Sequence record: NC_041884.1
Direction: 5' to 3' (one strand)
Length of the DNA stretch: 64,000 bases
The first letter of the stretch is position 1; every line of letters starts with the position of its first letter. The translations under genes were made by a program, and so were the position numbers. This document shows, piece by piece, positions 52,279-53,555 of this stretch. Under the pieces are notes generated by a model. The model did not search any database and was not told the DNA's origin. It saw only the letters and a list, made by a program, of their open reading frames with translations.

Positions 52279-53555
52279 CGAAATCTTCAATACAAGCCGA
52301 AAACTTGTACCAGCAGCATTATCTGCATCTATAGTTATTAACTATACGTCGAGACTATATCTTAATTTATACATATACTTATAGAATGATTATGTTATCT
52401 TTATCATTCAATATATGTATAAACCACAAGCACTTCGGAAACTCTTGTTCCCTACTCCTTCCTACAGGATAGTCGTTGAACCTTACTCTTAGGTAAAACC
52501 CTTAGAGTCTTGGCTGCTGATATTGCATTTACTCAGCGTAATTATAATAACTAATAGATAATTACACATGAATCTTCACACTTTTTAAACATTCACGCTT
52601 GCTATTTCTAGCTACGTTGTAGTGTATGAAGCTTTAGCCTTTCCCAGCAATTCACTTGTGTTACGACAGATGTCTATTCATCTGAAGAGCTTTTAATCTT
52701 TTCTTCAATAAAAGATTTAATTTCATTTAAAGCTTTAAATTTAAATAATTCAGTACAGCCTTTAAATGCATTACCATCTGAAATGTAATAACGATCAGAG
52801 TCAAAAGTACTAAGTACTAATTTTTCTATATTAACTACATCTCTAGCTTTAGCTTCTAAGTCTAGTATTACTTCTTTTTCGAATTGTTTATAAACAACAG
52901 GTTTAAACCTATCTTCAACAGTTCGTGAAGTTACACCAACTTTTATAAATTCATACTGTTTTGATTTAAATTTAACTAAATAAATACGAGCAGGTTCTAA
53001 TCCAGATTCATCAAGATTAGTCATTCCACCAAAACGAGAAAGTTTTAATCTTCCACATTTTGGACAACCATTGCCTTGTAAGTGACTATTAGGTTCTTGC
53101 TTAAAATCACCATGATGAGGACATCCAATAGTAATTTTAATATTCCAAGCCTTATAATCAACTTTTGAATAATCGTATTTAGTACCATGCATTTTTACAA
53201 AATCTTCAATAACTTTATCTTTCGATTTAGTATTTCTTTTAGATTTTGCATTAGTCTCACAAGGTTTACAACCATTAAAATGTAGATGATTTGCAGGTGT
53301 CTGTTCAAAAGTATTAGAACATTGATTACAAATTATCTTAATCTTAACATTGTTTTTATTGTAGTCTATTAACGAATAATCAAAACGATTTCCGCCATAC
53401 TGCATGAGCTTTCTGAATAAAATTGTCTTTTCTTTCTTCTATTGATTGCATTTAGTTCTCCTTATTTATATTTATATAATGTTAATTGGTTATATTTCAA
53501 ACCATAAAACAATTATATAATACTTCTTTGGAGAACTCAATTCATAGATTAATTA
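52279..53555 (-). mobile_element. Group I intron (1277 nt) in the RNAP gene
   Basis: 5' exon ends in U (AGT|TAA) and the intron ends in G (TTTCG|TTA). Core elements: P GAATTGCTGGGAA (52641..52653), Q ATCAGCAGCC (52512..52521), R GGTTCAACGACTA (52470..52482), S AAGATATAGTCT (52352..52363). P3 is CACAAG/CTTGTG and P7 is GACTA/TAGTC. Splicing restores RNPS|LWRT. Confidence 0.93.
52674..53451 (-). CDS. Intron-encoded homing endonuclease (two Zn-ribbon DUF723-like repeats plus GIY-YIG-like domain), 258 aa after a +1 shift at CGG-A (53394)
   Basis: Repeats (W/H)G-x-(R/K)-(F/Y)DYS...C..C/H..F.Q.P..HL...GC..C; C-terminus IYLVKF...FIKVGVT. The AAGGAG SD precedes ATG 53451, whereas the track ATG 53405 has no SD. 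Confidence 0.8.

Follow-up and report, generated by a model that had tools for sequence, protein, structure and literature searches.

The closest described counterpart of the element analysed here is an optional group I intron of the jumbo phage PhiPA3, which carries the endonuclease gene gp210 and lies in the aspartate-triad region of the virion RNA polymerase gene (gp211/209; Birkholz et al. 2024, PMC11620839); its HNH enzyme nicks the polymerase gene of PhiKZ and lowers the yield of PhiKZ in co-infection (PMC11620839). The group IA introns in td, nrdB and sunY of phage T4 provide a second point of reference: their core contains P7.1 and P7.2, an in-frame stop codon stands at the intron start, the endonuclease gene is looped out of a peripheral helix, and the introns are optional among related phages. 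The T4 endonuclease genes lie in the loops of P6 or P9 and not of P1, belong to the GIY-YIG or HNH families proper, and need no frameshift. An endonuclease gene in the P1 segment is documented in nuclear group I introns of ribosomal DNA (rDNA), and linear introns of this kind can yield full-length or 5'-truncated circles (PMC3679873). Here we consider a window of 64,000 nucleotides (nt) at the right end of the genome of Acinetobacter phage vB_AbaM_ME3 (ME3 below; NC_041884, 234.9 kb; record 170901-234900), in which, with high probability in our judgement, a single-chain, two-barrel RNA polymerase gene is split within its beta-prime-like double-psi beta-barrel by a mobile, self-splicing intron of group IA (53555..52279, minus strand; positions are those of the window unless stated otherwise) that has an endonuclease gene in its P1 loop. 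The element, absent from the annotation, belongs to an already known type of mobile element and adds an example to it.

The ME3 intron has the T4-type features listed above, and differs from the T4 introns in the loop that holds the gene, the nuclease family and the apparent use of a frameshift. It shares the P1 position with the nuclear rDNA introns, which are eukaryotic, of class IC1/IE, encode His-Cys box enzymes and are transcribed by polymerase I. Like the PhiPA3 intron, it is an optional, endonuclease-bearing group I intron in the aspartate-triad region of a jumbo-phage polymerase gene. In contrast to PhiPA3, however, the nuclease combines T5orf172 with treble-clef fingers and falls outside the HNH family, the site lies upstream of the triad, and the predicted host gene encodes a single-chain two-barrel polymerase where PhiPA3 has one subunit of a multisubunit enzyme; by the grouping of PMC7824862, ME3 also falls outside the nucleus-forming phages. 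Other insertion sites in relatives of ME3 include one inside the triad (site B, DxD|GD) that is equivalent to the PhiPA3 insertion beside the second aspartate. One precondition for interference of the PhiPA3 type can be seen, in that close relatives of ME3 differ in the occupied site. The resemblance to PhiPA3 would be one of working principle, not of membership. The original prediction, made from the sequence, had cited as established that intron endonucleases of jumbo-phage polymerase genes can mediate competition between phages; that precedent exists, in an HNH enzyme of another family.

The intron-split gene lies on the minus strand and encodes about 1150 amino acids (aa), with the break between ...RNPS and LWR.... 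GenBank lists three separate genes here and has no intron annotation: gp152, a 'hypothetical protein' of 798 aa (55949..53553), gp153, an 'endonuclease' of 243 aa (53405..52674), and gp154, a 'hypothetical' gene that starts at an internal ATG and whose open reading frame (ORF) ends at 51214. The internal start of the gp154 coding sequence (51214-52114) leaves out the first 21 codons of exon 2, and the ME3 genome announcement is silent on intron, endonuclease and RNA polymerase. Exon 1 terminates in ...AAT CCT AGT at 53556, and the intron opens with TAATTAATCT at 53555; because the intron starts with UAA, exon 1 runs straight into an in-frame stop codon. The 3' end of the intron reads ...GATTTCG at 52279, and exon 2 opens with TTA TGG AGA at 52278. 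Every position given in the original prediction was recovered on the minus strand when the sequence was re-read.

The junction itself is fixed by comparison with uninterrupted homologues. In 13/13 homologues covering the site, of which ten are full-length (1138-1207 aa), the last residue of exon 1 and the first of exon 2 map to neighbouring residues (for example P0005 809|810, P0016 787|788 and P0034 828|829), and tblastn of P0005 on ME3 DNA returned the same two blocks. The intron thus stands where it had been proposed, at NPS|LWR within an R-x-P-x-L motif: it falls inside R-N-P-S|L-W, 57 codons upstream of the aspartate triad DxDGD, and R806, P808, W811, D864, D866, G867 and D868 are invariant among 35 full-length sequences. 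The reading frame across the junction was followed in joined contexts of 16 residues, compared between ME3 and six other intron-bearing loci. An intron-less allele was recovered from wastewater run X1, one contig of which bridges 52275 to 53559 via six letters, TCT CTG on the coding strand, that encode Ser-Leu and are synonymous with AGT TTA of ME3. We rejected this joint as evidence of splicing: the codons are those of a relative, and L005, the closest relative of ME3 (95 % protein identity, 91.6 % DNA identity in exon 1), carries the intron-less sequence of X1 exactly, so the contig is DNA of a relative and not spliced ME3 RNA. As a sequence comparison, the X1/L005 allele places the intron boundaries with single-base precision. 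Intron-less sites, which are candidate targets of the endonuclease, read TCT|CTG in L005, GCG|CTT in L009, TCA|TTA in L010 and TTC|TTA in L011; TTA as first codon of exon 2 was accordingly discarded as a marker of intron presence, being found in the intron-less L010 and L011 as well. No co-conversion tracts were found between ME3 and L005, the divergence being even (91.6 %) except at the two junction codons.

The covariance model RF00028 of Rfam matches 52720..52329 on the minus strand with 51 bits (E 5e-10), and did so again when the whole genome was searched. The core has sequences resembling P, Q, R and S (AAUUGCUGGGAAAGG, AUCAGCAGCC, GUUCAACGACUA and AAGAUAUAGUCU), and the segment between P7 and P3' contains P7.1 and P7.2, UCCUGUAGGA and GGGAAC..GUUUCC at 52469..52437; we assign the intron to subgroup IA because these two hairpins sit between P7 and P3'. 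Six metagenomic contigs carry homologous introns at the same codon boundary, with lengths of 1343 nt (L002), 1302 nt (L003), 520 nt (L007), 492 nt (L008), 451 nt (L004) and 447 nt (L006). In all seven introns the first base is U, the last base G and the preceding exon base U, and all terminate in ...GAAGAUNNCG (terminal omega-G). Compensatory changes among the seven are seen in P1 (exon/guide), P2, P3, P5b, P6a, P8, P9, P9.1 and P9.2: P3 occurs in three fully compensated versions, and a U-A pair of P2 is replaced by C-G in L007. In L002, L003 and L007 the counterpart of GGGAAC..GUUUCC is GGAGAC..GUCUCC, which has changed two of its six pairs and retains its pairing. P4 and P7 are invariant, and hence uninformative on covariation. 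Covariance model and covariation together uphold the proposed group I intron, the core of which, from P3 to P9.2, is confined to the 3' part of the element as had been claimed. At E<=1, Rfam missed the near-identical introns of L002 and L003, probably on account of their insertions, and exact-pattern scans of IMG/VR and JGI metagenomes gave no match to the P1'-P2-P3 segment. A contig of wastewater run X11 that matches around 52489-52582 belongs to a related intron in which 92 nt of the P5/P6 periphery are swapped for 37 other letters; several further X11 contigs share just the conserved core segments of 35-42 nt, indicating that the intron family is diverse in this sample.

The position of the endonuclease gene follows from P1, which the original prediction had paired over a long distance. 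At the splice site, G52690, C52689 and U52688 face U53556, G53557 and A53558, so that G52690 would form the U-G pair with the last exon base. The three exon bases and their guide covary (AGU/GCU in ME3, L002, L003 and L007; UCU/GGA in L008; UUU/GAA in L004 and L006). Inside the intron, TTAATCT (53552..53546) is complementary to AGATTAA (52699..52693), and this 7-bp P1 extension has counterparts in GAAUUCU/AGAAUUC of L002 and GAAUUUU/AAAAUUC of L003, and in a 10-bp pairing in L007; these span loops of ~850, 830 and 45 nt, respectively. Sequence and register of the extension vary among the four introns, while the pairing persists and always adjoins the guide; the helix covaries. All three introns at this site that bear an endonuclease gene (ME3, L002 and L003) hold it in the P1 loop. 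In L004, L006 and L008 the intron lacks an ORF, and its P1 is a compact hairpin whose loop measures 3-8 nt; L007 is also without ORF, yet its P1 is extended around a loop of ~45 nt. The claim that the ORF sits in the P1 loop (L1) therefore holds; that this place is uncommon is apt in part, as it is documented in nuclear introns (PMC3679873) and is the rule in this phage lineage.

A near-identical variant without the gene was found in run X11, from a wastewater library described as cDNA. The contig matches the intron only, at 97.6 % identity, and is a circularly permuted sequence of 419 nt that runs from 52616 to 52279, then AAUU, then from 52693 to 52597, with the whole L1 insert absent. This shows that an ORF-less form of the ME3 intron exists, in which P1 has shrunk to AGU|U...AGCU with a six-base loop. 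The joint lies exactly at omega-G, G52279, and the U at intron position +1 is missing, as expected if omega-G attacked one base in. We lean towards the reading that this contig represents excised, circularised intron RNA, a reading treated as suggestive because run X11 is rated 'probably DNA'.

The encoded protein matches PF10544 (T5orf172; 25.7 bits, cut-off 20), PF14311 (DUF4379, a treble-clef zinc finger; 26.5 bits, cut-off 24.5) and phrog_681 'endonuclease' (E 1.2e-44), and its match to phrog_559 'HNH endonuclease' is confined to the zinc modules, residues 5-161. We take T5orf172 to be a member of the GIY-YIG clan. As originally described, the last codons of the ORF overlap the ribozyme: the frame extends across AGAUUAA, the guide and one strand of P2 (the 5' one) to its stop codon TAG (52676..52674) in the P2 loop, and the ORFs of L002 and L003 likewise overlap guide and P2 and stop in the P2 loop. 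At its other end the frame is broken. Upstream of the break, 19 codons in the -1 frame that follow AAGGAG and an ATG at 53451 specify the first half of zinc module 1 and join the long frame at UGG CGG A. L002 and L003 retain the start, the peptide ERKDxF[IV]xKA and A-TGG-CGG-A, and the long frame of L002 has no start codon of its own nearby. At a second intron site, the endonuclease genes of L005 and L003 read CAT-CGG followed by a stop codon; the +1 frame of L005 (about 7746) goes on with the conserved HG...GC..C module, and that of L003 (about 9208) reads HGNKY, these being the first five residues read. A CGG frame break (A-TGG-CGG-A or CAT-CGG-N) is thus present in five intron-encoded endonuclease genes of ME3-like phages (53391-53463, minus strand, in the window; about 6085-6170 in L002; about 7500-7590 in L003; and the two positions just given), and zinc-module sequence continues in the +1 frame in four of the five. 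In the long ORFs of the window no codon is rarer than CGG (3 in 11,816, or 0.25 per 1000). When the shift is read through, PHROG scores go up from 153.9 to 158.4, from 79.2 to 88 and from 75.1 to 81.7. On the strength of these sequence patterns, a programmed +1 shift at CGG appears a likelier reading than decay. The window has just three copies of the heptamer TGGCGGA, and the two outside the endonuclease gene are at 33810 and 24286 (minus strand).

That the host gene encodes the active-site region of an RNA polymerase, as had been proposed, is borne out by structure prediction alone. We predicted the structure of P0005, a natural uninterrupted homologue that is 56 % identical to exon 1 and 62 % to exon 2, from an alignment of 35 rows; the AlphaFold model had a pLDDT of 87.4 and a pTM of 0.84. 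A Foldseek search with this model gave 349 matches at E<=0.001, and 50/50 of those listed are second-largest subunits of multisubunit RNA polymerases. In an exhaustive VIA search of PDB structures, single-chain enzymes align along the model: QDE-1 with Z 14.4 (466 aligned; model residues 66-1131), maize RDR2 with Z 12.3 (76-1129), Thermus phage P74 gp62 with Z 11.1 (143-1129), P23-45 gp96 with Z 10.2 (144-1058) and crAss phi14:2 gp66 with Z 5.8 (142-1145). Beta/Rpb2-like chains match residues 16-583 (Z 10.7-13.2), beta-prime/Rpb1-like chains residues 593-1130 (Z 9.4-10.9), and isolated double-psi barrels residues 753-889 (Z about 6-7). The triad DxDGD is invariant in the 35 sequences and reads SDVDGD in ME3. 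The ME3 host gene is thus a predicted single-chain two-barrel RNA polymerase, with the intron in its beta-prime-like barrel. In its predicted layout of a beta-like barrel followed by a beta-prime-like barrel with DxDGD in one chain, it is like QDE-1/RDR2, SPbeta YonO, P23-45 gp96, P74-26 gp62 and phi14:2 gp66; sequence similarity to these enzymes is undetectable, and the structural Z values are those for QDE-1, RDR2, P23-45 gp96, P74-26 gp62 and phi14:2 gp66.

From this anatomy we infer a course of catalysis, frameshifting and cleavage for the ME3 element. As the pre-mRNA folds, exon AGU and U+1 would pair with the guide AGCU (52691..52688), with a U.G wobble at the 5' splice site, and the 7-bp UUAAUCU/AGAUUAA helix would close the P1-loop insert of ~850 nt that carries the homing-endonuclease gene. 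Once guanosine had initiated splicing, ...AAU CCU AGU would be joined to UUA UGG AGA..., which would restore R-N-P-S-L-W, and the spliced junction would read AAUCCUAGU-UUAUGGAGA. The endonuclease would be translated from its own ribosome-binding site via a +1 shift at the rare codon CGG; since its ORF ends inside P2, its ribosomes must unwind the guide and P2. The enzyme would presumably cut intron-less alleles of co-infecting relatives, and the intron would spread in this way.

Several observations weigh against the interpretation as a whole. The Rfam score exceeds the gathering score of 50 by just 1 bit, and the model sets P1 on a local hairpin. The guide pairs with only three exon bases, and by energy the long-range P1 duplex of ME3 is no better than chance (-6.6 kcal/mol, matched by 58 of 500 shuffles); the support for long-range P1, drawn from sequence covariation, is comparative and not thermodynamic. 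To be read without a break, the endonuclease needs either a +1 shift or a start at the internal ATG at 53405. For the host gene, separate searches with the two ME3 exons gave no Pfam or PHROG match of either exon at E<=0.1 and none in the PDB, whether searched by sequence or with a profile; the ME3 genome has no match to PF00623 at E<=10, and the gene falls outside the Rpb1/Rpb2 profiles of Pfam. The polymerase assignment takes as its basis the predicted structure of a homologue with 56 % identity. Finally, among the listed sequencing runs none is on record as RNA, and no RNA evidence for ME3 was found in them.

A frame break could also mean that the intron splices while the endonuclease is a decaying pseudogene, with TGG CGG A a true defect and the intron immobile in ME3. 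Such a history would fit three observations: zinc module 1 has its conserved N-terminal half in another frame, the long frame of L002 has no start codon nearby, and four relatives (L004, L006, L007 and L008) are without the gene, as a cycle of invasion, decay and loss predicts (PMC3679873). We nevertheless consider it unlikely: three diverged phages retain A-TGG-CGG-A together with the upstream ribosome-binding site and ATG, with both frames open and conserved at the protein level; two endonuclease genes at another intron site show the same device at CAT-CGG; the codon concerned is the rarest one; PHROG scores are higher with the shift than without it; and the ORF 3' of the break is intact over 243 codons.

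The two remaining alternatives concern the intron itself. If splicing did not take place, gp152 and gp154 would assemble as two polypeptides, comparable to the split subunits of PhiKZ type, and the stretch separating their genes would hold a free-standing endonuclease gene and the relic of a ribozyme; the three separate GenBank genes agree with this, and jumbo-phage polymerase subunits are described as frequently split (PMC7598289). The break, however, is inside a barrel, between adjacent residues of the invariant R-x-P-x-L-W motif, exon 2 has neither a start codon nor a ribosome-binding site at the junction, the ribozyme core is upheld by compensatory changes, and homologues without a break at this site exist, among them the closest relative; we regard the split-protein arrangement as very improbable. 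Scarcely credible, in turn, is a P1 formed by the hairpin 52717..52695, with the 5' splice site near 52710 and an exonic or free-standing endonuclease gene. The covariance-model alignment does use this hairpin, and it folds at -6.2 kcal/mol; but its counterpart is absent in L002 (-1.3) and L003 (-0.3) despite a near-identical core, a splice site near 52710 cannot restore the reading frame, and exon continuity sets the 5' site at 53556/53555. The Rfam 'P1' is a by-product of a covariance model that is unable to bridge the 850-nt loop. We therefore retain the spliced polymerase gene with a mobile intron, the features of which are collected in Table 1; in that table, the sigma-70-like hexamers 5' of the endonuclease gene are a consensus match that is not enriched relative to shuffles.

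Table 1. Positions of the polymerase exons, the intron and its parts in the window
Feature	Position	Strand	Remarks
Exon 1 of polymerase gene (predicted)	53556..55949	-	798 codons = gp152; ends ...HVRNPS; U53556 last exon base
Group I (IA-type) intron	52279..53555	-	1277 nt; starts UAA; omega-G at 52279
P1 5' strand	53546..53558	-	exon AGU 53558..53556, U+1 53555, P1 extension UUAAUCU 53552..53546
L1 insert with homing-endonuclease cassette	52700..53545	-	
Sigma-70-like hexamers TTGAGT-17-TATAAT, 5' of endonuclease gene	53512..53540	-	consensus match
Endonuclease start region	53391..53463	-	AAGGAG ribosome-binding site 53463..53458; ATG 53451; 19-codon leader frame; putative +1 site UGG CGG A 53397..53391
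Endonuclease ORF as annotated (gp153)	52674..53405	-	two treble-clef zinc modules and C-terminal T5orf172
P1 3' strand	52688..52699	-	AGAUUAA 52699..52693; A52691 opposite U+1; internal guide G52690-C-U52688
P2 hairpin CAGAUG/CAUCUG	52667..52684	-	CAGATG 52684..52679, CATCTG 52672..52667
Catalytic core and 3' extensions	52290..52660	-	P3, P4, P5 extension, P6/P6a, P7, P7.1, P7.2, P8, P9, P9.1, P9.2
Exon 2	51214..52278	-	354 codons and stop; starts LWRTQ; contains SDVDGD

The analysis amends the ME3 record, in which two 'hypothetical proteins' and an 'endonuclease' would become one intron-split gene for a predicted single-chain two-barrel polymerase; a comparative survey of jumbo phages credits no such polymerase to the group of ME3 (PMC7824862). 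It would also add a second, independent lineage with mobile introns in the aspartate-triad barrel of a phage polymerase, and the PhiPA3/PhiKZ competition finding thereby looks general. Natural pairs of intron-plus and intron-minus alleles are now available for testing, and the conserved candidate +1 frameshift in the nuclease genes could serve as a compact reporter for CGG-dependent frameshifting. Together, the hidden polymerase, the occupancy of several intron sites and the shared frame break lend added interest to the element.

Relatives of the polymerase were sought with each exon. Exon 1, used in a word-indexed protein search, retrieved 36, every one of them metagenomic; exon 2 retrieved 97 in a full HMMER scan. 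Among cultured phages, the 50,697 phage records searched by tblastn with the two exons yielded ME3 itself and the PBAB25 record alone. The latter (MG366115.1, 40 kb) contains three 100 %-identical pieces of the ME3 gene (window 51200-56000), which are scattered across 5.6 kb and account for 39 % of the query, and it looks like a chimeric or mixed assembly.

Alignment of P0005 to the relatives mapped four intron sites: A, the ME3 site (P0005 809|810); B, inside DxD|GD (866|867); C (about 961); and D (1032|1033). ME3 is occupied at A only, L005 at B only, L004 at A and B, L003 and L006 at A, B and C, and L009 at C and D; Rfam group I signatures were found at site B in L004 and L006, and weakly in L005. 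With at least four sites variably occupied in ME3-like phages, we tentatively suggest, as a possibility to which we give rather low weight, that co-infecting relatives could cut each other's polymerase gene with nucleases gated in two ways, by a +1 frameshift at CGG (UGG/CAU-CGG-N, in five genes at two sites) and by an ORF running through guide and P2, so that nuclease translation and ribozyme folding would be mutually exclusive on any one RNA.

Further group I intron matches were noted in the ME3 record outside the window. At record 69737-70002 on the minus strand, a group I intron that has neither an ORF nor an annotation (Rfam 80 bits; L013/L017) sits between gp061 and gp060, both annotated 'DNA polymerase', and two more group I matches of 81 and 29 bits, at record 138639-138975 and 139052-139271 on the minus strand (L012, L015, L016), lie in an unannotated gap between gp134 and tRNA-Met.

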